Sequence record: PV029745.1
Direction: 5' to 3' (one strand)
DNA length: 64,000 nt
This document shows positions 2,526 to 27,187 of this stretch, piece by piece. The position numbers and the translations under genes are program-made. Each line of letters opens with the position of its first letter. The stretch's first letter is position 1. The notes under the pieces are model-generated. The model ran no database searches. It saw only the letters and a program-made list of their open reading frames with translations, and was not told where the DNA came from.

Positions 2526-3122
2526 ATGAGTAAGTTTAGTGAGCTGCCGTTTAATTTGATGGATACAATACACCATCCAAAACCAACTCCTGAAGATGAA
2601 AAACGGCTCTCTGAAGCCCTTGATAAAATATTCCCCCATAATCCAAAATTGGAGCACAATCAAATGACCGCACTGTCCCCGAAAGAACAACTGGACCAAG
2701 CTGTAGAAGCTTCTGCTGTAGCAGCACAACAACTCATTAAAGAAGATGGCTGGGCCATTCTTCGCGAATTGTATCGCACTACAGCTGCTGCTCTTAATGC
2801 TACTTCCATTGTTATCATTCCGGCGCTGGAGCGTCGTGAAGAAATTCTGAGTAAACTCAGTGATCCTGAAGGTTTCTCTAAAGATCTGCAAAACTGCATG
2901 TCTGATATTGAACAGATGATCAGTGCTCTGGAAGCTCTTAGTATTCTTCACGTAAACAAAACTGGTACACCTGATCTGGCTGATCTCGATCAAATCGGTA
3001 AGCTGACTTTGGGTTACGCAAATCTCCAACATAAAGTAGAAACAGCTGTTCAACCACTGCTGATGGGTCTCATTGCTAAGATGCAAGAAGCTGGTGTTGA
3101 TACTGTTTCCTTCGTGAAATAA
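2526..3122 (+). CDS. Hypothetical helical protein
   Basis: 198 aa, AGGAG RBS, first gene of a + strand operon. Confidence 0.7.
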   Translation: MSKFSELPFNLMDTIHHPKPTPEDEKRLSEALDKIFPHNPKLEHNQMTALSPKEQLDQAVEASAVAAQQLIKEDGWAILRELYRTTAAALNATSIVIIPALERREEILSKLSDPEGFSKDLQNCMSDIEQMISALEALSILHVNKTGTPDLADLDQIGKLTLGYANLQHKVETAVQPLLMGLIAKMQEAGVDTVSFVK

Positions 3123-3133
3123 GGTAATACAAA

Positions 3134-4735
3134 ATGCAAGAGCTTGATATGGATAAAGAAGACAATTATCCTGCTGAGGGTAATTGGGAACAGCAAGCTG
3201 ATGCAGAAGTAGAACAGGGGCCCACGGGTCCCACTCTACCGGACGCACCTGCGGAAGAAGTATCTTCTTCGCCTGCTGTTGAACTACCTCCTCTGGTAAT
3301 TGACCAGAAACCAGTTAACTTCACTGAGACACGTTCTTGTTCTAGTGAAGCTATTCCTGGTATGACCTCTTTGATGAGTTTCATTCTAGAAAACCCCAAG
3401 ACCTTTAACCAGGTATTGGAACGTCACTCGGCGCTATTGAATGGAATGCACCAAGGTGATCTCACTACTACTAGCAGTGACCGAGATTGGTTGATTTCTC
3501 TAGTAGCTGGTATGAACCATACTAACCTTGACCCCACTCCTATCGGTGGGACGGAACGTGAAGGTTCTGTATGGCAACAAGGTATTACTGGTCATGATAA
3601 CGGTAACCTTATTCGACCAGGCCGCCCTTCTCAAAAGATCGATCGTAATAAACGACACAGTAAAGAAGAACTGTTGGCATACCTCTCCAAGAAATCTGGT
3701 CTTGGTGCGACATACGAAACGTTTATGCCTCGTTCGGGTATCTGGCTTCGCCTGCGTGCTCCGACACTTACTGAAGTAGTCGCATTGCAAACAGAAATGC
3801 AGCAGATCAAGCTGCGGCTGGGAATGCAAACCAAAGGCATGTCGTTCTCTAACGCTGGTTCCGTAATGATGAACGCGATGACTGACCTGGCTCTGTCTTG
3901 TGTTATTGCATCGAACAAGTCCTTCATTACTCCAAGTGACCTGGAACATGAACTATCGATCTTTGATGAAGCTATCCTGCATCATGCCCTAGCTTCTACA
4001 ATGTACATTGATGGATTCAACTACGACGTTCCATGTATTGCAGACCCGGACAACTGTACGGCTCGTATCACTGCAAAACTTAACATGTCGTCTATCGTTT
4101 GGTTTGACAACACTGTATTCAGTAATGATCAGCGTAAATTTATCGCTAAGAAATTTGCACCTGCTACGGATGAAGACTTCAAAGCTTACCGTGAAGGTTT
4201 CGGTATTGGCGGTAAGAAAGTATTCTGGTTTGGTGATATTGGTGTTCGTCTTGCTATCCCGACTATCGCTCAACGTAAGATGGCTGCTTCTCAGTGGTCT
4301 CAGACATTGATCGAAATGTCTCAAGGTACATTTAACGAACCGCCACATGGTGTTCAACGTTCAGCGTACATTGATAAACTGAGTAAAGCTACTATCGCCA
4401 TGCAGTATGCTCATTGGGTAGATGGTATCTATGAAAAGGACGACGATGTAGAAGACTTCGAAGATCAACTGCTTTCCGACGATCAGGAAATCATTAGTGA
4501 TTATCTGGCGAACACTCTGAGTGATCCGCAGTACGCGGAGCAGTTCTTTGATACCGTACATGAGTATACTAACTCTTGCGTACTGGCTGTGGTAGCTCTT
4601 CCATCGCATAACTGCAAAGAATGTAAAGGTCCTCAGGGCCAAGCATTCAACGAACGTTTCCCGCACCTTGTACCGCTAGACATGATGGCAATATTTTTCA
4701 CGTTGGCGGGCCAGAAAGCCAAGCACCTGGAGTAA
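3134..4735 (+). CDS. Putative tail/baseplate-hub assembly chaperone (T4 gp26/gp51- or gpG-like); phiKZ gp77-like by synteny
   Basis: 533 aa; FMPRSGIWLRLRAPTLTE resembles the T4 gp26/gp51 N-terminal motif; Cys pairs CIADPDNC and CKEC. Confidence 0.5.
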   Translation: MQELDMDKEDNYPAEGNWEQQADAEVEQGPTGPTLPDAPAEEVSSSPAVELPPLVIDQKPVNFTETRSCSSEAIPGMTSLMSFILENPKTFNQVLERHSALLNGMHQGDLTTTSSDRDWLISLVAGMNHTNLDPTPIGGTEREGSVWQQGITGHDNGNLIRPGRPSQKIDRNKRHSKEELLAYLSKKSGLGATYETFMPRSGIWLRLRAPTLTEVVALQTEMQQIKLRLGMQTKGMSFSNAGSVMMNAMTDLALSCVIASNKSFITPSDLEHELSIFDEAILHHALASTMYIDGFNYDVPCIADPDNCTARITAKLNMSSIVWFDNTVFSNDQRKFIAKKFAPATDEDFKAYREGFGIGGKKVFWFGDIGVRLAIPTIAQRKMAASQWSQTLIEMSQGTFNEPPHGVQRSAYIDKLSKATIAMQYAHWVDGIYEKDDDVEDFEDQLLSDDQEIISDYLANTLSDPQYAEQFFDTVHEYTNSCVLAVVALPSHNCKECKGPQGQAFNERFPHLVPLDMMAIFFTLAGQKAKHLE

Positions 4736-4773
4736 TCAACGAGGACCCCCGGCATAGTCGTCTAACAATTAAT

Positions 4774-5196
4774 TTGGAGGACGACAACGGGCACGTTACA
4801 ATGAACTCTTTCGGTCGCAAGACTGTTAATGGTAAGAGTGCATTCGATGAACTCGTGCGAACGCTAGATGCCGTAAGGCCAGCTATTGCCGAAATGTTGA
4901 CCAGGAAGGCCTACCATAAAGACTACGGTATTTTCGATCATGATTCACCAGAGGCTGATCCTTTAGATCTGGTTAGAATGCATCCTAAGGAAAACGTCGT
5001 AGAAGGTGGACCTGAAAGAACTTGGATACGGAAGTTTGTCAATTACAAGATCAATGACATTTATGGTTTATCTTTACTAGAGTTCTTTGAACTACCCTTT
5101 AATGATTGTTTGTTCATGATTGAACTTGCAGAGTCGAAGGCTATTCAAAGTACATCGCAAGCTAGACAAATCGAGAAAGATCTTGGATTAAAATAA
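4774..5196 (+). CDS. Putative gpT-like chaperone extension; frame is open from 4627 and may be reached by a -1 frameshift
   Basis: No convincing RBS for TTG4774 or ATG4801; C-terminal YGLSLLEFFELP resembles GT/gp51 C-terminal motifs. Confidence 0.5.
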   Translation: MEDDNGHVTMNSFGRKTVNGKSAFDELVRTLDAVRPAIAEMLTRKAYHKDYGIFDHDSPEADPLDLVRMHPKENVVEGGPERTWIRKFVNYKINDIYGLSLLEFFELPFNDCLFMIELAESKAIQSTSQARQIEKDLGLK

Positions 5197-5210
5197 AAAA
5201 AATAAAGCAT

Positions 5211-5234
5211 AGCTCCTACCCGAAGGTAGGAGCT
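5211..5234. terminator. Bidirectional intrinsic terminator
   Basis: AGCTCCTACC-CGAA-GGTAGGAGCT between convergent genes; A-run on the left, TTATGCCG on the right. Confidence 0.85.
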
Positions 5235-5244
5235 TTATGCCGTC

Positions 5245-5484
5245 TTACACTTGTGCTTCAATCATCATGAAAAGACCACCCAAGAAGAGAGTGATCAGCG
5301 CTACGATAGCAGCTCCCCATATGAGAGCAGTGCAAATCATATTAATGCGGTCGAGCATGATGATATCTTTCTTGGGTAAACGAGTTCGACGAACATCATC
5401 GTTATCTTTTACCAGTTTTGCTACGAACAGGGACCCAGCGATAATCGAAATAGAGATCCACCAGATCAGCATGATGGTTTCCAT
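5245..5484 (-). CDS. Small membrane protein (2 TM)
   Basis: 79 aa, two long hydrophobic stretches, GGAG RBS. Confidence 0.7.
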   Translation of the reverse strand: METIMLIWWISISIIAGSLFVAKLVKDNDDVRRTRLPKKDIIMLDRINMICTALIWGAAIVALITLFLGGLFMMIEAQV

Positions 5485-8440: not shown

Positions 8441-10414
8441 TTAGAGCAGCTTACCTCCCATGACCGCAAGATCGTAGGGATGGTCATTCCTCAGTGTGTA
8501 GAGGAAACTGCCAGGATTGTTCAACGGCTCATGTTGCTTCTCAAACGACATCGCACCAGCAAGAGAACGGGACATCATCAGTTTGTTGTATTTTTCAAAC
8601 TGACCCGTAATACCCGGCTTAGGCAGACGATAATCGCGTTCAGCGATAGAGCGCACCATCATAGCATAAACCAGAACCTCACAGTGAACGGCATTCAAAG
8701 AGAACTTCTCATTCAACAGCGACACAGTGGCTGCCAAAGCATCAACTGGGTCTTTGTAGTTCTTAAGATAAGTCTTGCTAGTAAAACCTACCTTATCTGA
8801 GCTCAGTTTAGACCCTTCAGTATCACTACCAGAGTGCAGGAATGACTGAATACGCTTCATCACTTCGTACATGTTTACGTGCTTATTAGGCAACGTCAGG
8901 AACGGCAGGGCAAAGTCAAACCCGGCCATATCGATCACGATATTATCACGAGCGTCAAGTTCCCAACGTACACGTTTGATATGTTGCAGCATTTCAGTCG
9001 ATAGACTAGCTCGACGGTTATACAGCGACACCGTCAATACATCGCCTTCGTCTACTCCATCAACCGTCCGTACCAAACCAATACGGGTAAGTTCAGAAGC
9101 ACTCGGTGCTGGATATGCACTAAGGTCATCGATCATCAGAATATCAGCCAGGTTCTGAGCTTCGTTACGACCGATCATCAAGCGGAAACCTTTACCCGAG
9201 AGTTCTTTCTTCAGATAAAGAGTTTCAGCCGCAGATCCAGTGCGCAGGTACTTAGCTTCGACGCCACCAATCTGATACTGTTCTACAGCCGAGGTTGCAT
9301 CAGTGTGTTTTGTCGACAATACCGCAGAAGTGATTTTGTCACCCATGGATACAGCCGATACCTGACCAATGACAGTTCCTTTTGGAATAGAGAAACTTAG
9401 TCGCCCATAACACCGCGAACATACACCCTGAGGATCCGGATGCATACATCCCAAAATAGAACGCATCTTAATCTTTTTACCGATAAGATGTTTCTCATCC
9501 CCTTTCAGCCAGTCCAGTTGACCTGTCTGTTCGTTCAGATAGTACTTGCCACGAAGAGCTTTCAACGTACCCTGCATTACAGGGAAGTCGATCAAGTGAC
9601 CATTACAATCACCAGTGTGTAGGTTCTGTACATACTGAGCAATCAACTGAGACTTCCGGTTGAAATACTCGGTTACACGCAGTAGCTCTTTGTTATACAA
9701 CAGAGCTTTGGTACCCGATCGGGATTCGATCATGTTTTCATACAGACCCCAAATACCATCAATGTAACCAGTGGTACACGGCTCACTGAAAATATCAGAG
9801 TTAATGTCTGTCGGGAAACCACGTGGTCCGTATGCCTGAAGCAATTGCTCCATTTTCTGCGTACCCGAGCGCAGGCCCTCAATGATGCTGTTACCACGGA
9901 ACTGTGTTTCGTCGTTGAATGCTTCTTTGATCATCCCGTAAGAAATGTTTTCAATCCCGTACGTAGTAGGCTGTACATCTTGGTTAGCCTTTCTAACTGC
10001 CGGGTGATTGTACACTTCCATAATGTCAAAGATCGACAGGGTTGCAATGTAAGCACTCAGTCGAGTAGTGGTTTCATTATAAAGCCAATTCTTTCCTTCA
10101 ATAGCCAGTTTAGCCAAAACCTCTGGATCGATCTGTTCACCACTCCATGCATGAATACCCCAAATAACTTTGTTCAGGTATTTCACAAGAGATTTAGAGG
10201 TAACCCGAGTAGATGCCAGATGGTAATCTTTCAGAACCGGGGCATCAGGGAAAGCTTTCAGTGGATACCAGAGCAGAACCGACAGCTTGGTGATCCGATC
10301 TTTTGCATAGAGTTTCTCCCCGTCATCAAAGATGATCTCATGCCATTCACTTGGAATCGCCCAGAGTTCATCGTAACTCATATTGAGAAGATCACGTGCT
10401 TTATACTGATTCAT
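8441..10414 (-). CDS. Non-virion RNA polymerase beta' C-terminal subunit (phiKZ gp74-like)
   Basis: 657 aa; beta' motifs YGPRG, ESRSGTKAL, Zn site CMHP...VCSRCYG, trigger-loop-like LSTKHT. Confidence 0.9.
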   Translation of the reverse strand: MNQYKARDLLNMSYDELWAIPSEWHEIIFDDGEKLYAKDRITKLSVLLWYPLKAFPDAPVLKDYHLASTRVTSKSLVKYLNKVIWGIHAWSGEQIDPEVLAKLAIEGKNWLYNETTTRLSAYIATLSIFDIMEVYNHPAVRKANQDVQPTTYGIENISYGMIKEAFNDETQFRGNSIIEGLRSGTQKMEQLLQAYGPRGFPTDINSDIFSEPCTTGYIDGIWGLYENMIESRSGTKALLYNKELLRVTEYFNRKSQLIAQYVQNLHTGDCNGHLIDFPVMQGTLKALRGKYYLNEQTGQLDWLKGDEKHLIGKKIKMRSILGCMHPDPQGVCSRCYGRLSFSIPKGTVIGQVSAVSMGDKITSAVLSTKHTDATSAVEQYQIGGVEAKYLRTGSAAETLYLKKELSGKGFRLMIGRNEAQNLADILMIDDLSAYPAPSASELTRIGLVRTVDGVDEGDVLTVSLYNRRASLSTEMLQHIKRVRWELDARDNIVIDMAGFDFALPFLTLPNKHVNMYEVMKRIQSFLHSGSDTEGSKLSSDKVGFTSKTYLKNYKDPVDALAATVSLLNEKFSLNAVHCEVLVYAMMVRSIAERDYRLPKPGITGQFEKYNKLMMSRSLAGAMSFEKQHEPLNNPGSFLYTLRNDHPYDLAVMGGKLL

Positions 10415-10440
10415 TATTTACCTCTTGGCGTGCAGCCCGG

Positions 10441-12552
10441 TTAAACACCGGGCGCGTACTTGAACTGCAATCCACGGCATTCCAACAAGTGCGACAGAAG
10501 TCCAACTGGTCGGGAGTTACCGAATGGGATTTTGGAACGATCAACCGCTTTCTCAATGTTGGACGGTTTATCCGCAGTGAGGATAGAGTTGATCACAGCA
10601 ATGTGTGCTTCGGGGTTATTGGTTTGATCCAACAGTTCTACCGTGGGTAGTGCACCGACCGTACAGTTGTAAGATCGAGTCTCAGATTCACCAAACGAAC
10701 GAATAGCGCTTTCTCGACCAGGTGTACTGGACCGATCGGAGTTATTCAGTTTCGATGGTAGACCAAACTGTTGAGTCTTCACCGATGCTACGGCCGACCA
10801 GTCTTCACCGATCTTTTCGAGCAGCATCATGTATAGCGGGCCAAGCAACATTGGGTCTTTTGTCGTTACTTCTTTACCTGTTTGATCTCGATATGTCACC
10901 GGTGCATATGTTGGACAGAAGCGAGAATTAAGGATTTGGTTACTTGCTGTCGGTAAATGTACGGGGTCATCAACCGGGGAATACAAGTACGCAAAACCAT
11001 CTCTCAATACATGCGATACATGTTGAATCGGATTCGGGTGATCCTTAACCATTCCATGCATTGTCGGAGTAACGATTGCATAGAAATCAAGCAGCTCATT
11101 AAAGGCATACTTGATAAAGTCAGGATTGTTTCTGATATGGTTTACAACGTCGTCAAGTTCATAGGAACCATGACGCTCTAGCCCACATTCAACTCGGAGA
11201 CGTTGAGCCAGATCGCGAGATGCTGCACCGAAACCATGTTCATAGATACGACCATAGTTAGAACGACGCATAGTCGAGCCGCCAAAGATAACAACATCTG
11301 CAACGTTACCATTCACGTCACGAGGCATATCTGCTCGCTTCATGATCTTACAAACGACACCTTTTCCGCCATGGAAATCAGTGGCTTTATATGCACCGCC
11401 CGGTTCTTTAATCGATTCATAGGTGATTTCAACACGCCATTCATCAAGTTGATCCAGTCGATACATACGGGTCAGCTTACGTTGACCTTCGGCTTGAGGC
11501 AGATAGATCATCGCTTCTACTACAAGTTGACGAAACTCCTCGGTCATATGGAGGCGATCTTTACGGCGGGCAGACAGACCTTTATATACCTTGATGATCT
11601 CACGGTAATACGACGCCAGTGCGTCATAGTACTTCCGCAGTTGTCCATCCATACCACTCGGAGTATAAGATGGATTTTGACGATCATCCCAATACACTTT
11701 GATGTCTTTAATGATTGCGCCCGGATCACCAATTACGGCACGGTCGAACGTACGATCGAGAGTGCGCAATGCACGTGGAGTCATTTCAGCTGGCGAGAGA
11801 TCGTCATCAAGGTCTCTAACAGCGAAGATAACACCATCATCACGAATACGTTCACCGATATCAGGGAAGAGCTTGATGTTTTTATCGTCACCGTACATAT
11901 TGAGGAAGAATGCTTTCTTACCAGCTCCGCCAGTAGCGGTTGTATAAGTACGAGGAGCCATCTTCTCCCGAAGGAACTCATCGCAGAATACGAAACCGTC
12001 CTCAATAGTACCAGGCATAGAACCGAACATCACGGTGGCGTTAACGCCCATGCCCAGAAGACCATTTTCTTTTACAGTTGTGGATTGTGCAATAACCGTA
12101 TCTTTGGCAAACATCTCGCCAACGGCAAGGTTATTCCATACATCTTTCTGCTTCTCAAGTTTGAATCCAAAGTCCTGGTGAAAGCTTAGGTACTCTGGTA
12201 CATGGATAACACCGATTCGTTTAAACTCGTCGTAATACTCCTCATACACGATCGTAGTTACGGGGTTATGTCGAATAGATCCACGACCCACACCAGTGGG
12301 ATACTTACGGATAATATTCAGAACAACGCAATCCGTTGGGAAACGAATATCGAAGGTATGTTCAGCATAACGCATTTCGATACCCGCCATTACCCGACGT
12401 GGCTCGTTCCCTTCCACTACTGGCGATTGTCCAATATGTGACAGCAACATGGCACCGCGTGCCGCGGAGGTTGTTCCGTAATATGGATCAATTGCCGCGT
12501 GACCGAGCAAACGCAGGTTAATTTCACGGATGGCATTTGGTAGACTTTGCAT
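10441..12552 (-). CDS. Non-virion RNA polymerase beta C-terminal subunit (phiKZ gp71-73-like), uninterrupted
   Basis: 703 aa; beta motifs GMGVNA, EDGFV, KATDFHGGKGVV, RRSNYG, GESETRS. Confidence 0.9.
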   Translation of the reverse strand: MQSLPNAIREINLRLLGHAAIDPYYGTTSAARGAMLLSHIGQSPVVEGNEPRRVMAGIEMRYAEHTFDIRFPTDCVVLNIIRKYPTGVGRGSIRHNPVTTIVYEEYYDEFKRIGVIHVPEYLSFHQDFGFKLEKQKDVWNNLAVGEMFAKDTVIAQSTTVKENGLLGMGVNATVMFGSMPGTIEDGFVFCDEFLREKMAPRTYTTATGGAGKKAFFLNMYGDDKNIKLFPDIGERIRDDGVIFAVRDLDDDLSPAEMTPRALRTLDRTFDRAVIGDPGAIIKDIKVYWDDRQNPSYTPSGMDGQLRKYYDALASYYREIIKVYKGLSARRKDRLHMTEEFRQLVVEAMIYLPQAEGQRKLTRMYRLDQLDEWRVEITYESIKEPGGAYKATDFHGGKGVVCKIMKRADMPRDVNGNVADVVIFGGSTMRRSNYGRIYEHGFGAASRDLAQRLRVECGLERHGSYELDDVVNHIRNNPDFIKYAFNELLDFYAIVTPTMHGMVKDHPNPIQHVSHVLRDGFAYLYSPVDDPVHLPTASNQILNSRFCPTYAPVTYRDQTGKEVTTKDPMLLGPLYMMLLEKIGEDWSAVASVKTQQFGLPSKLNNSDRSSTPGRESAIRSFGESETRSYNCTVGALPTVELLDQTNNPEAHIAVINSILTADKPSNIEKAVDRSKIPFGNSRPVGLLSHLLECRGLQFKYAPGV

Positions 12553-23250: not shown

Positions 23251-24717
23251 TTAAGCTGCTTTCGCCAACCATTCTTCCAAGGACGGAAGATAGTCCTCGT
23301 GAGCATAGTTGATGATGGTCTCTACTACCGGACCTTGTAGTTCCAAGTTACCCGAGATCTCGTGCGGATCATCAGGACTCAGTACCCAAGTATGCGGAGC
23401 GATTCGTTCAGTTGCATCAGCCAGATAGTTATCGGGCATCAACGTCAAATTCAACTGATCGCCGTCGAAATCCGCATTAGGAGCTTTAAGACAGAGGACC
23501 GACATGCTGATCGAGTTATCGCGAATGTCATTCTTGATAACGGTGATGAAGAACTGTTGAGTCGAACCACGTTGCAGAGTCGGGTTGCGGTGGAATACAC
23601 AAGGAAGACCCTTATACTTCGATTCCGCGATGATCTCTTTGAACAGTTGATCGATGACTTCGTTGTACTTCAGAACGTTCTCGTAAATGAACGAGTTCGC
23701 TTGGCGAGTCGTCATACGGAATTTGCGTTTGAGCTTGTTGATCAGATGATACTTCAACAGCTGACAACCGACACCCCACGGAATGTGAAGTTCATCGTAA
23801 TCATGCGGATCACTGATAGAAGTAATTACTGCACGTGCAGTCAGGTTAAGACGACCACCTAGTACATGTCGACGAACCAAACCGGGTTTCTGTGCAATTC
23901 GTTGTTTGTCGTAGTTCTCGTGGAAGATAGCTAGAAGCTTCAGTGCACGAGCTACACGGTTTTGTACAGTGATTGGTTTCAGCGGAATTGCCGAACTACC
24001 GATACTACTAATAGTCAGTACCGCATCGATTGCTGCGCCGATCGGCTTATCGATGTAAACACCCGAGGTCGTAGACTCTACAACGAAGCAGAGTTTAGTT
24101 GGGATCGGAATGTTCTTCGGGAACAGATGTTCTTTATTCTGGTTAACGAATGCAGCCATCTCACCTTTGTTGGTATTGATGATACTGCTATCGAGCAAGA
24201 ACTGGAAGATCGTATCGAAGTTCTGAACGAAGTTGTTCAGTCCACGCGGGAACTGGCGAGCCAGCAACTTGTCAAGTTTCCGTTTTGTTTCCTTCGAACT
24301 GATCGTATCGTAATCGTACTGATACTGGGTGTTGGTCAGATACTCCAGGAAGTCGAATTCTTTCATCGACATATAACCTGAAAGCATAATCCACAACTCG
24401 GGACTCACCAGACGATCCACCCCTTCCGGTGCCCGAATCCACATCGATGGAACGATGGGTCGGTTGCTCGTGCTTACTACTGGTGTACCGCAGTTATCGC
24501 AGATTACCCCAAGCTTGTATGCTTCTGTGATATGCTCACAGTCACACGAAGCTGAGTTCTCGATCGCATCTGCATCCTGATAATGGGAGAACAGATAACG
24601 TTGGAATTCCTCCTTTTGTTCAGCATTGCTGGTATTAAAGTCATTAGCGAATACTACTTTACCTCTTTGGTTAGCGAGCATCTCGTCATGATTGACAACC
24701 TGAGCATATAGACCCAT
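23251..24717 (-). CDS. Non-virion RNA polymerase beta' N-terminal catalytic subunit (phiKZ gp55-56.1-like), uninterrupted
   Basis: 488 aa; KAPNADFDGDQ catalytic motif, N-terminal Zn finger (CDC...CDNC), GGRLNLTARAVI, RNPTL. Confidence 0.95.
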   Translation of the reverse strand: MGLYAQVVNHDEMLANQRGKVVFANDFNTSNAEQKEEFQRYLFSHYQDADAIENSASCDCEHITEAYKLGVICDNCGTPVVSTSNRPIVPSMWIRAPEGVDRLVSPELWIMLSGYMSMKEFDFLEYLTNTQYQYDYDTISSKETKRKLDKLLARQFPRGLNNFVQNFDTIFQFLLDSSIINTNKGEMAAFVNQNKEHLFPKNIPIPTKLCFVVESTTSGVYIDKPIGAAIDAVLTISSIGSSAIPLKPITVQNRVARALKLLAIFHENYDKQRIAQKPGLVRRHVLGGRLNLTARAVITSISDPHDYDELHIPWGVGCQLLKYHLINKLKRKFRMTTRQANSFIYENVLKYNEVIDQLFKEIIAESKYKGLPCVFHRNPTLQRGSTQQFFITVIKNDIRDNSISMSVLCLKAPNADFDGDQLNLTLMPDNYLADATERIAPHTWVLSPDDPHEISGNLELQGPVVETIINYAHEDYLPSLEEWLAKAA

Positions 24718-24750
24718 ACCTACTTCCTATTATGTCTCGACAAAAAAAGG

Positions 24751-24785
24751 AGATAGAAGCGGCTCCCGAAGGAGCCGCCTTATCT
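24751..24785 (-). terminator. Strong intrinsic terminator with cUUCGg loop
   Basis: Minus strand GCGGCTCC-TTCG-GGAGCCGC, stem extended by AGATA/TATCT, then CCTTTTTTT. Confidence 0.85.
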
Positions 24786-24789
24786 ACTA

Positions 24790-25253
24790 TCGATGGACCA
24801 CCAACGGAGCCTGGCACGATCCTAGCATCGTCTACAAAGCTTAACCTCCGCTCTTCTCTGTAGCACTTTGACACTAGGACCTTTTACCATCCATCGTTGT
24901 TTGATCACACGTTACCCAAGAGTAACTCCTTTCGGTTAAGTGATCTTTTAATACGGTTTACCTATTTCTGTTAAGAGTAGGTGGAACTTATATGTTCGCT
25001 TACCCAGTTACATCACCGTAAGTTTTATAACACACTGGGACTTTGGCAGGTCAATAATAAAATGTGAACGTCAGACCTTTATGGCGCTGGCGCCTGCAAT
25101 TGAGTTCACATTTAAATAACTAGTCGAGATCGGGTGGGTACTTTTAAACCCACGCGACCTCCTAGAACCTGTAATGTAATTCCCTCCACGCGCTTTCTCT
25201 TAAGTGTTGGCGTATCGCAAATTAAATTGAACCAGGTTAACTAGTTACTGTTC
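24790..25253 (-). ncRNA. Candidate large structured ncRNA or structured chmA 3' UTR
   Basis: No credible ORF; about 10 nested helices; G.U pairs favour the minus strand; contains a GAAA tetraloop. Confidence 0.5.
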
Positions 25254-27119
25254 TTAGTACAGAGTACCAACCGAACCTACCATGTTCATCTGGTAGCCGC
25301 CACCAACGCCCATGCCGTTGACAACCTGTGCGGTAGAACCGACAGCGAAGTCTTGGATCATGGTGTTGCCAACGAAGCGCTGAGCACCGAAGACCTGTGC
25401 AACGTTGTCCATTGCTACAGTCAGACCAGCAGCAGCAATCGCCTTATCCAGACCCTCGATGAACTTCGGGTTGAAGATACCACGATGTGCACGAGTGGTG
25501 TAGGTTACAGCACCCAGGAACGCACGGTCGTAGTTCTTGGATTGCTTGTTACGCAGTTCCGGATGGATGTTCGGGTTGCATTGAGTACCGTACCAGGACA
25601 TCCACTCTTGTTGGTTGCCCTCAGCAGCGTTCAGTGCGCCCAGTGCATCCAGGTCACGACGGTCACGTTTCTCGTCGCCATCCCAGTAGTAGCCCTTGTT
25701 CACTTCAGTGCCAGTCGATGCAATGATCGGCTGAGTGTTGAAGTCGAAGAAGCGCTCGAAGCCACCACCAACCAGGTTCTGTACAGCGCGAATGATCGCG
25801 GCAGTAGCTTTCTGTTGGTTCGGGCCACCCATGGCATCCAGGAAGATTACGTCCAGTGCTGCGTTGTCGCCCATGCGATCCAGATCGATCAGGAAGGACG
25901 GGTTCGGACGAACCATGCTCAGCATCAGATCAGCGAAGTTCTGATCGGTGAAGGTATCGGACTTGGTATCGATCTTCTTACCCAGGTTGGACAGCCAACC
26001 CAGAGCACCGATGTCACCCAGGTCTTTAACTTTACCAACTTGAGGCAGGAACTTACGAGCCCAAGCCTGGCCAGCGGTTACGCGGAAGGCGTTCGACAGA
26101 GCGAAGAGGTACAGTTCCAGAGTGTTTGCCTTGATCCAGTTGGCCTGACGAATGTCGGTTACCAGGATCGCCGGGGAGAACGGCGGCAGCGGTTGGGTCT
26201 GTTGACCGAACATCTGGGCTTGCGGAGTGGGGGTGTACTCCAGGGTTACTTGTACCGACACCTGGTTCAGCATGGTGTCTGCTTCGTAGAACTCGTTCTC
26301 TTGCTGACCTTGTTTCTTGGTACGGTTCAGGCTGATCACGATGTCGGACTTGATCGGGTTACCGACGCTGTCCATTACCGGACGACCGGAGAAGTCCATC
26401 TTGGCAGCCAGGGTTTCATCTTGGCCGCGCAGCATTGCGATCTGGAACGGAGTCTCGCCAGCTTTCTTAGCCAGAACGTCGTCACACAGGTTGACGGAAC
26501 GGATCAGAATGTCTTTCAGCAGGACTTCGTCTTTCAGATCGAATTCAGCCGGGATCGGCAGCGGGCCAGCCGGGTGTACTTCAGCCTTCGGACGACCGGT
26601 GGTCTGACGAACGAATTCGCAGATGCGGTTCCAGTACTGAACGGTGAATACGTCTTGTACTTCGACGTCTACATCGAAGCGATCGTGGCTCATGCCGTTC
26701 TGAATGGTAACCTGACGCGGAGGCAGGGTGATTGCCGGGTTCGGCATGATCAGCGGACGAACTACGATGATACCGTTACCACCAGCAGCGTGCTTGACGA
26801 TCAGCAGCGCGGAGTAGCCAACACGGTTGGCATCACGGTCGAAACGCAGAATCTGGAAATCGTTTTCCAGGTCTTGATGGTCGATGGCATCTTTGCCAAC
26901 GCGGGTCATTACTTGCAGCGCTTCGCTCGCACGGGCGTCGCCGCCATCAGTACGACCGGAACGTTTGAACATGTTCGGCAGGCCGGAAATACCGCCTTGC
27001 AGAGCTTGAGGTGCAGCTTGTTGCATACGAGGAGCTTCCTGTTGTGCGCGCGGAGCAGCTTGAGCCGGAGCGTTGTTGGCTTGAGCTTGAGTGTTTTGAG
27101 TTTCGGTATCACGAATCAT
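25254..27119 (-). CDS. chmA: Chimallin, the major phage nuclear shell protein (PhuN; phiKZ gp54 / 201phi2-1 gp105 family)
   Basis: 621 aa; MIRDT..., GGDARASEAL, FDRD, QENEFYE, LSNAFR, DIGALGW, DGDEKRDRRDLD match the 201phi2-1 chimallin as recalled; directly upstream of the nvRNAP beta' gene. Confidence 0.97.
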   Translation of the reverse strand: MIRDTETQNTQAQANNAPAQAAPRAQQEAPRMQQAAPQALQGGISGLPNMFKRSGRTDGGDARASEALQVMTRVGKDAIDHQDLENDFQILRFDRDANRVGYSALLIVKHAAGGNGIIVVRPLIMPNPAITLPPRQVTIQNGMSHDRFDVDVEVQDVFTVQYWNRICEFVRQTTGRPKAEVHPAGPLPIPAEFDLKDEVLLKDILIRSVNLCDDVLAKKAGETPFQIAMLRGQDETLAAKMDFSGRPVMDSVGNPIKSDIVISLNRTKKQGQQENEFYEADTMLNQVSVQVTLEYTPTPQAQMFGQQTQPLPPFSPAILVTDIRQANWIKANTLELYLFALSNAFRVTAGQAWARKFLPQVGKVKDLGDIGALGWLSNLGKKIDTKSDTFTDQNFADLMLSMVRPNPSFLIDLDRMGDNAALDVIFLDAMGGPNQQKATAAIIRAVQNLVGGGFERFFDFNTQPIIASTGTEVNKGYYWDGDEKRDRRDLDALGALNAAEGNQQEWMSWYGTQCNPNIHPELRNKQSKNYDRAFLGAVTYTTRAHRGIFNPKFIEGLDKAIAAAGLTVAMDNVAQVFGAQRFVGNTMIQDFAVGSTAQVVNGMGVGGGYQMNMVGSVGTLY

Positions 27120-27187
27120 GATTTGTTCCTATGTTTGTAACGTTTCTTGATCAAGAATGAGATCCAACAGTGTATTGGATTCAAAAC

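Follow-up and report, generated by a model that had tools for sequence, protein, structure and literature searches.

In Pseudomonas phage phiHQ (Chimalliviridae), to which the 64,000-nt stretch of record PV029745.1 analysed here (the window) corresponds with 100% identity, the gene of the nuclear shell protein chimallin (chmA) and that of the β′ subunit of the non-virion RNA polymerase (nvRNAP) are separated by a 536-nt spacer (24718-25253, minus strand). This spacer is best understood as an RNA-gene cassette of self-contained modules and not as a chimallin-specific regulatory untranslated region (UTR). On comparative sequence grounds, the core of its 5′ module, module A, is a real, well-supported and apparently undescribed phage RNA family, which adds a triply pseudoknotted RNA to the few phage RNAs at transfer RNA (tRNA) islands (GOLLD, ROOL, theta ribozymes). 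The original prediction, made from the letters of the stretch, had described a single densely structured element of ~460 nt; the region is rather a mosaic of exchangeable modules, and this composite make-up as well as the pseudoknots go beyond that account.

The structured non-coding region is genuine. As predicted, it is the minus strand that is densely structured: 509 nt of it fold at -171.5 kcal/mol, compared to -134.0 ± 6.9 kcal/mol for dinucleotide shuffles (z = -5.4; 0 of 100 shuffles as good), while the plus-strand spacer reaches z = -3.5. Values for parts of the minus strand are z = -4.6 for module B alone and z = -2.8 for the 5′ 305 nt. The claim that the spacer is devoid of a credible open reading frame (ORF) also holds; the longest, of 62 aa, has a GTG start and runs through the terminator into the RNA polymerase start, its phiKZ counterpart is truncated to 31 aa, and neither the ORF check nor the phiKZ comparison revealed a credible or conserved frame in the spacer. 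A search of the whole window with Rfam 15 at the gathering score gave no match at all, in keeping with the view that this is not a described RNA family. With E ≤ 10 on short stretches of the window, only chance-level matches were obtained, all at the terminator hairpin, and the same threshold on stretches of RP13, L022, 124.01, PA1C and PhiPA3 returned terminator-like chance matches and tRNAs only. The cassette is composed of the following features:

25249-24952, minus strand: module A, comprising 5′ domain and core (fold, homologues, covariation)
25114-25249, minus strand: 5′ domain of module A, a three-way junction of 136 nt (independent folds of phiHQ and Psa21 agree)
24952-25113, minus strand: module A core, one of many copies of an RNA motif found widely in phages (covariance model R1, covariation, homologues)
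24945-24791, minus strand: module B (RNAalifold consensus, compensatory pairs)
24903-24945, minus strand: first domain of module B, a small three-way junction of GAUCAC/GUGAUC, CC-GAAA-GG and GUUAC/GUAAC (conserved, with compensatory changes)
24791-24896, minus strand: second domain of module B, a long irregular hairpin (RNAalifold consensus)
24742-24785, minus strand: intrinsic terminator, a GGCGGCUCC-UUCG-GGAGCCGCU stem with GAUA/UAUC extension and U7 run (conserved in relatives)

Structure and covariation of module A

The core of module A measures ~105 nt and is built from five helices, three of which are pseudoknotted; its two ends, 5′ and 3′, both lie within helices. In phiHQ, S1 pairs 25113-25104 with 25069-25060; S2 pairs GC (25097-25096) and AGGUC (25078-25074) with GACCUGC (25052-25046), a hairpin being inserted at 25095-25079; S3 pairs 25039-25034 with 25008-25003; S5 pairs AAGU (25043-25040) with ACUU (25023-25020); and S4 pairs ACGGU (25019-25015) with ACCGU (24957-24953). 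The resulting helix order is S1-S2-S1′-S2′-S5-S3-(S5′,S4)-S3′-S4′, in which S1 and S2 interleave as a pseudoknot. The hairpin loop of S3 is 25 nt long and nearly invariant, and its ACUU-ACGGU stretch pairs both ways, with the AAGU just 5′ of S3 (S5) and with the ACCGU tail (S4), which puts the 3′ tail beside the junction J2/3. Along the strand, the 5′ half of the core consists of the S1 5′ strand, UCAAUU, the S2 5′ strand (NNNNGUC), UGAC, the S1 3′ strand and a linker ending in UAAU; the 3′ half consists of the S2 3′ strand (GACNNNN), YAAAGU, the S3 hairpin, 0-60 nt of optional hairpins (two in phiHQ, at 24997-24960) and AAACCGU. After the second base of the S2 5′ strand, phiHQ, Psa21, RP13 and six others carry a hairpin flanked by A and AUAA. 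About 45 unpaired, junction and loop nucleotides are near-invariant across distant phages.

The 5′ domain of module A is made up of an outer helix (25249-25239 with 25125-25115), an inner helix (AACCUG, 25238-25233, with CAGGUU, 25171-25166) and a long hairpin (25161-25127). Between phiHQ and Psa21, the inner helix has changed in a compensatory manner (AACCUG/CAGGUU versus AGCCGU/ACGGUU), and this corrects one helix of the original prediction: CAGGU at 25171-25167 had been paired with ACCUG at 25051-25047, but its partner is AACCUG at 25238-25233, and the ACCUG in question is part of the S2 3′ strand. Otherwise, all complementary strands listed in the prediction occur where it had placed them, and structural conservation, which was looked for in relatives, was found as compensatory changes in both modules A and B.

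After removal of chance matches and duplicates, ~27 distinct copies of the core remain, originating from viral, metagenome and metagenome-assembled genome (MAG) contigs and from four cultured large phages. When queried with the phiHQ-specific part, blastn matched only Psa21, in the same spacer between chmA and the RNA polymerase gene, and Ralstonia phage RP13, directly upstream of a tRNA-Leu; the copy of Xanthomonas jumbo phage Xoo-sp13 was found by blastn with other family members, and further copies by pattern scans, derived from conserved stretches, of IMG/VR, MAG contigs and metagenomes. Two MAG contigs with the core are labelled Saccharibacteria and Bacteroidetes, respectively. Among 50,697 phage records, the motif is carried by phiHQ, Psa21, RP13 and Xoo-sp13 only, and loose scans (the loop 17-mer alone; GTCTGACG...AAAGT) yielded mostly chance matches in coding sequence. 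The covariance model R1 has exactly one match in the window, on the minus strand; a second core copy was found there neither by R1 nor by blastn at word size 7, and R1 gave no match in the chmA loci of phiKZ, PhiPA3, 201phi2-1, Phabio, Viktualia, D6 and Noxifer.

In an alignment of 12 sequences, 97.9% of the cells are standard pairs and 13 of the 24 pairs have changed on both sides. For four out of five measures, 0 of 500 shuffles reach the observed value, while 12 do so for the fifth, the count of further pair types; when the partner is slid by 1-3 columns, pairing falls to 20-40%. In a set of 26 sequences, pairing of S2 is complete (182 of 182 cells) and four of its positions show three to four pair types, and the five junction-proximal positions of S1 are fully paired with two to four pair types each. 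S5 is U-A in 22 copies and G-C in four, with one exception, while S4 is invariant save for a compensatory change from A-U to U-A in Xoo-sp13. As read from these alignments, three core helices show strong covariation and the other two a thinner signal. In view of its size and conservation pattern, the core is a realistic candidate for a new ribozyme or a high-affinity RNA ligand. A literature text search with the motif sequences returned nothing, the supplementary tables of the 10,006-candidate csRNA catalogue and the ONT-cappable-seq study lying outside that search.

On three Ga0137411 contigs (L113, L114, L136), the motif occurs twice per contig in inverted orientation, with many single-base indels between the copies; these pairs look like fold-back assembly artefacts of error-prone reads and not like duplications.

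Module B, the terminator and the mosaic make-up of the spacer

Module B is present in 55 records, once per genome, all of which are Pseudomonas aeruginosa jumbo phages (phiKZ-like and PA1C-like). The RNAalifold consensus of eight spacers agrees with the helices of the original prediction, and 17 pairs are kept through two-sided changes; e.g., GAUCAC/GUGAUC is found as GAACCAC/GUGGUUC in PhiPA3, GUUAC/GUAAC as GUUGC/GCAAC in HPP-Temi, and CGAUGGA/UCCAUCG as CAAUGGA/UCCAUUG in phiKZ, where U-A has also been replaced by G-C. Besides CGAUGGA/UCCAUCG, the second domain contains the helices GGUCCUAG.../...CUAGGAUC and CUACAGAG/CUUUGUAG together with a side hairpin. The first domain was also considered as a tRNA-like minihelix serving as an RNase P site, a candidate which was set aside on account of the PhiPA3 version, in which a T-loop-like hairpin is not retained.

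The module B of phiHQ is 92% identical to that of SL2 and 86% to that of phiKZ, while the adjacent 600 nt of chmA and of the RNA polymerase gene show 60-65% identity in the same comparisons. In PhiPA3, the flanks are closer (72-76%), yet the alignment of module B extends over only 73 nt, with 68% identity. This discordance between module and flanks points to horizontal exchange among co-infecting P. aeruginosa jumbo phages and indicates that module B probably moves horizontally among them, on top of any selection.

At the 3′ end of the cassette, the predicted cUUCGg terminator was confirmed as a 9-bp GC-rich stem with UUCG loop (hairpin 24779-24758), followed by a U run at 24748-24742. It is common to phiHQ, the PA1C-like and phiKZ-like phages, PhiPA3, Psa21 and D6, with G-U/A-U variation, and in D6, Psa21, phiKZ, PhiPA3 and phiHQ follows the pattern UAGAUAnG, GGCUCC-UUCG-GGAGCC stem, U run; at the equivalent place in Noxifer, another UUCG hairpin is followed by a U run. 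A simple terminator scanner made no call, the U run beginning 9 nt past the core stem owing to the GAUA/UAUC extension. With its GC-rich hairpin, U run and conserved position, the element has the hallmarks of an intrinsic terminator and is predicted to terminate the phage RNA polymerases.

In D6 and Noxifer, the spacer between chmA and the RNA polymerase gene consists of only ~85 nt, i.e., the terminator and the region of the ribosome-binding site (RBS). Given this short spacer and the shared, recognisable terminator, the structured RNAs are to be regarded as having been inserted downstream of the chmA stop codon and ahead of an ancestral terminator. A spacer of ~392 nt is present in the sister phages HHBS36_1, PA1C, PS119XW, BRkr and HPP-Temi; its 3′ 200 nt are as in phiHQ, while the 5′ part is a different sequence of ~160 nt, module C. 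The phiKZ-like phages share this arrangement of modules C and B. Thus, phiHQ carries the ~300-nt module A where HHBS36_1 and phiKZ have module C, and the switch from module A to module B lies exactly at the base of the helix GAUCAC/GUGAUC. The flanks of phiHQ and HHBS36_1 are 99.7-100% identical, and the ChmA proteins of HHBS36_1, PS119XW and BRkr are 100% identical to that of phiHQ. Hence, the 3′ end of the chmA transcript is a landing site for exchangeable, horizontally moving RNA modules, and phiHQ together with HHBS36_1 or PS119XW constitutes a natural near-isogenic pair with and without module A. Module C was not found outside P. aeruginosa phages in the IMG/VR pattern scan, which for modules C and B returned only PA7 and PhiPA3 plus two chance matches, and neither of these two modules matched an Rfam family.

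Further observations concern the same spacer in other phages. In Psa21 (~3150-3205 of the locus), a degenerate second copy of the ~30 terminal nt of chmA comes after module A. This copy can be aligned to the genuine chmA 3′ end of D6, lacks 2 nt and resembles a trace left by the insertion of an RNA module. The 515-nt spacer of PhiPA3 (2552-3066 of the locus) represents a third variant of the cassette, in which module C is enlarged by an insert of ~170 nt and module B has diverged strongly. In Phabio, 201phi2-1 and Viktualia, chmA and the nvRNAP β′ gene are separated by one to two small ORFs, and the non-coding sequence following chmA measures 130-285 nt.

Genomic context and candidate functions

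Outside phiHQ and Psa21, every core copy found lies elsewhere than after chmA, the majority within the tRNA arrays of other phages. In 11 copies (RP13, Xoo-sp13, L022, L054, L105, L112, L120, L123, L127, L154 and, probably, L142), only 3-22 nt separate the end of the core from the next tRNA; six of these tRNAs are tRNA-Leu. Several copies reside inside arrays of 12-18 tRNAs. On contig L054, a minimal copy of 113 nt exactly fills the spacer between two tRNAs, and the copies of L053 and L142 begin at most 10 nt from the upstream tRNA. Wherever examined, flanking genes and tRNAs are on the strand of the motif, which implies that it sits within or between transcription units. The proteins of the window had no similarity to the motif-bearing loci in tblastn searches, and a Pfam analysis of ORFs neighbouring the motif showed nothing recurrent.

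Several motif contigs are peculiar in other respects. The metagenome contig L112 (530-2852) encodes two tRNAs with CUA anticodon (amber suppressors, called tRNA-Pyl by ARAGORN) as well as a transfer-messenger RNA (tmRNA), which hints at a stop-codon-recoded phage. On the 245-kb jumbo-phage contig L152 (the same as L043), ~2 kb of the coding strand (9398-11426) are free of ORFs ≥70 aa and contain one motif copy; this long ORF-free region may hold further structured RNAs. The flanks of L116, L141, L149 and L155 share additional conserved non-coding blocks (UAGCCGGUAGCU...AGCUAUUCGGnUAGUAACU, CCAGAG..CUCUGGCUAAUCAAAAGAU), and one such block lies upstream of the motif in one contig and downstream in another, which suggests larger multi-module RNAs or arrays.

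The original prediction had tied the spacer RNA to chimallin, as a 3′ UTR of chmA acting in cis on mRNA stability, localisation or export, as a ligand of ChmC or as a scaffold for shell nucleation. The position directly after chmA in phiHQ, Psa21, the phiKZ-like phages and PhiPA3 speaks for such a role, as does the strong structure, which could block 3′ exonucleases. However, phages with 100% identical ChmA have a different 5′ module, D6 and Noxifer lack any such RNA, most core copies are located in tRNA arrays with no chimallivirus genes in the examined flanks, and ChmC was found to discriminate little or not at all by sequence among phage mRNAs (PMC11077065). The assumption that the spacer RNA serves chimallin biology is, therefore, unsupported; because of the module exchange, the phages lacking the RNA and the location of most core copies elsewhere, chimallin-specific roles are unlikely, and we consider a cis-acting chmA 3′ UTR distinctly improbable.

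The leading proposal, for and against which we see the balance as about even, is that the spacer specifies a stable, processed, trans-acting non-coding RNA cassette on the abundant transcript of chmA, reportedly the most abundant early message. The cassette would be transcribed as the tail of this transcript, since only ~25 nt separate the terminator from the nvRNAP β′ start codon, the promoter scan detected no sigma70-like site in the spacer, and gp54, the phiKZ counterpart of chmA, is reported to be the first gene of an operon of six, which has both early and middle promoters (PMC8244752); high expression together with chmA may reasonably be expected. Each module folds independently, and the modules would then accumulate as stable processed RNAs acting in trans on a hypothetical partner, with the terminator passing only a fraction of the polymerases into the nvRNAP gene. 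Where the core is part of a tRNA array, RNase P, by cutting at the next tRNA, would set the 3′ end a few nucleotides after S4; the pseudoknot S4 would shield this end and S1 would close the 5′ end. Conservation of the ~45 unpaired and junction nucleotides across phages of unrelated hosts suggests that the core fold may bind a universally conserved partner or ligand, or may be catalytic.

For the proposed 3′-end formation, there is a eukaryotic analogy. In the MALAT1-mascRNA and MEN beta transcripts, RNase P cleavage at a tRNA or tRNA-like structure makes the 3′ end, which is then sequestered in a tertiary structure, and the ACCGU tail of the core, pairing into S4 at 3-22 nt before a tRNA, might be handled alike. 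The eukaryotic RNAs differ in forming a triple helix and not a pseudoknot, and the phiHQ core has no following tRNA.

Several points weigh against the trans-acting cassette. No tRNA follows module A in phiHQ and Psa21—neither a tRNA nor a tmRNA was found by ARAGORN or Rfam in the 64-kb window, nor at the Psa21 locus—so that the RNase P argument does not transfer directly. Some copies are followed at a distance of 15-25 nt by an RBS and start codon (L113/L114, L149, L126), which would also fit a role in cis. While the phiHQ core keeps all other conserved elements, it has UAUU before the S2 3′ strand in place of the UAAU that is invariant in the 12-sequence alignment (A4). The partner in trans is wholly hypothetical, and a literature text search did not find a non-coding RNA from the spacer between chmA and gp55, which may mean that no abundant species of its own exists or that none was sought.

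Alternatively, the module A core might represent a new class of self-cleaving or otherwise catalytic ribozyme that cuts polycistronic transcripts between cistrons, separating chmA from nvRNAP, the spacer from the tRNA, or an upstream from a downstream gene. The ~105-nt size, the three interlocked pseudoknots and the ~45 near-invariant nucleotides are typical of small ribozymes, the double pairing of ACUU-ACGGU brings the 3′ tail next to J2/3, every copy examined has genes or tRNAs of one strand on both sides or next to it, and there is a precedent in the HDV-like (hepatitis delta virus-like) theta ribozymes abutting phage tRNAs (PMC10879173). On the other hand, no Rfam ribozyme family matches, and the distance to the tRNA varies from 3 to 22 nt, so that the element itself could not make the mature tRNA 5′ end. 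We judge this ribozyme reading to be unlikely. The broader proposal of a new natural ribozyme class, or else a ligand- or ribosome-binding RNA, of large phages, which is employed in tRNA arrays and, in some chimalliviruses, in the most abundant early transcript, appears to us speculative and rather doubtful.

The placement of the cassette immediately before a terminator, behind which an essential early gene begins, with no room for a promoter, would also be compatible with a riboswitch-like or attenuator leader that responds to a ligand or factor and adjusts read-through into the nvRNAP genes; in several core copies, an RBS follows at 15-25 nt, and the conservation pattern is aptamer-like. Such a leader is nevertheless very unlikely, as no alternative pairing of the core with terminator or RBS is seen, 160 nt of module B intervene between core and terminator in phiHQ, most copies precede tRNAs and lack an expression platform, and D6 and Noxifer have the terminator alone.

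The least probable reading, to which we give hardly any credence, is that the RNA is of no use to the phage and represents a degenerate group I intron or what is left of another selfish mobile RNA. It would account for the frequent tRNA-Leu neighbours, the mosaic, horizontally exchanged distribution and the duplicated chmA end in Psa21, and the core has what we take to be short resemblances to IC3 tRNA-Leu introns (UCAAUUGC..., ...AAACCGU). In contrast, group I or group II introns had no match even at E ≤ 10 on short stretches, the ~105-nt core with its order S1-S2-S1′-S2′ is unlike P3-P9, the flanking genes and tRNAs are intact, and the unpaired nucleotides are under strong purifying selection in distant phages, which speaks for a function.

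Known RNA systems and neighbouring genes

The group I introns of the IC3 tRNA-Leu type resemble the core in their pseudoknotted core and in the association with tRNA-Leu, but were rejected as relatives. Stretches 24500-25500 and 24930-25260 of the window, RP13 and L022 had no group I match at E ≤ 10; there is no interrupted gene, chmA (621 aa), nvRNAP β′ (488 aa) and the neighbouring tRNAs being complete; and the helix order is not P3-[P4-P6]-P7-P3′-P8-P7′.

Nearest in kind to the module A core are GOLLD and ROOL, phage-encoded, multi-pseudoknotted RNAs of 580-800 nt whose functions are unknown and which are often found near tRNA islands, GOLLD having a conserved 3′ and a variable 5′ part (PMC12286853). 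Module A is likewise phage-encoded and, with 11 copies at most 22 nt from a tRNA, close to tRNA islands, and resembles GOLLD in its conserved 3′ core and variable 5′ extension. It differs in size (core ~105 nt, minimal copy 113 nt on L054), and the Rfam models of GOLLD and ROOL did not match phiHQ, RP13 or L022 even at E ≤ 10.

The theta ribozymes of gut phages are compact, pseudoknotted, HDV-like RNAs that abut tRNAs and have been proposed to act in tRNA processing (PMC10879173). They lie at the tRNA 3′ end, where their cleavage site is, whereas the module A core is mostly located 5′ of the tRNA at variable distance, has another helix order and matches no Rfam HDV family. Among small ribozymes, the Rfam families of hammerhead, HDV-like, twister, twister-sister, pistol, hatchet and glmS gave no match, and a hammerhead-like CUGACGA was dismissed, since it is not conserved across copies and the next base is A, U or C.

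The T4 species 1 and 2 stable RNAs (rnaC, rnaD) are, by annotation, small, stable RNAs beside a tRNA cluster and on its strand, and are presumably co-transcribed with it. They were rejected as relatives, since R1 with filters off had no match at 2909-3172 of L170, the best score of the locus being 10 bits.

From phiKZ, two UTR-derived non-coding RNAs have been described, 3′UTR_PHIKZ298 and 5′UTR_gp40; the former was seen by Grad-seq and Northern blot, and its 3′ end coincides with a putative Rho-independent terminator (PMC8545117, PMC10914365). They likewise are UTR-derived non-coding species of jumbo-phage mRNAs, but have two hairpins, measure 100-200 nt and stem from other loci, while the RNA of the spacer between chmA and gp55 is much larger and modular; it is not reported in either study (PMC8545117, PMC10914365).

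The cassette is bordered by two genes:

25254-27119, minus strand: chmA, chimallin/nuclear shell protein, 621 aa (ORF list; annotated as nuclear shell protein in relatives)
23251-24717, minus strand: nvRNAP β′ subunit gene, 488 aa (ORF list; annotated as RNA polymerase beta subunit in relatives)

The chmA stop codon directly precedes the RNA cassette. In tblastn, phiHQ ChmA is 100% identical to that of PS119XW and HHBS36_1 and 48.5% to phiKZ gp54. A 595-aa open frame with TTG start (25353-27140, plus strand) runs antisense to nearly all of chmA; this unusually long frame is probably a by-product of codon composition.

The RBS of the nvRNAP β′ gene is AGGAAG, ~10 nt upstream of the start codon. 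The gene is uninterrupted, with 488-489 aa, in phiHQ, the PA1C-like phages, PhiPA3 and Psa21, and is annotated as shorter (379-420 aa) in phiKZ-like phages; in SL2, an HNH endonuclease gene follows it (SL2 locus 3235-5258; phiKZ locus 2736-5018). This difference in gp55/gp56 gene length fits the long-suspected insertion of an intron or homing endonuclease.

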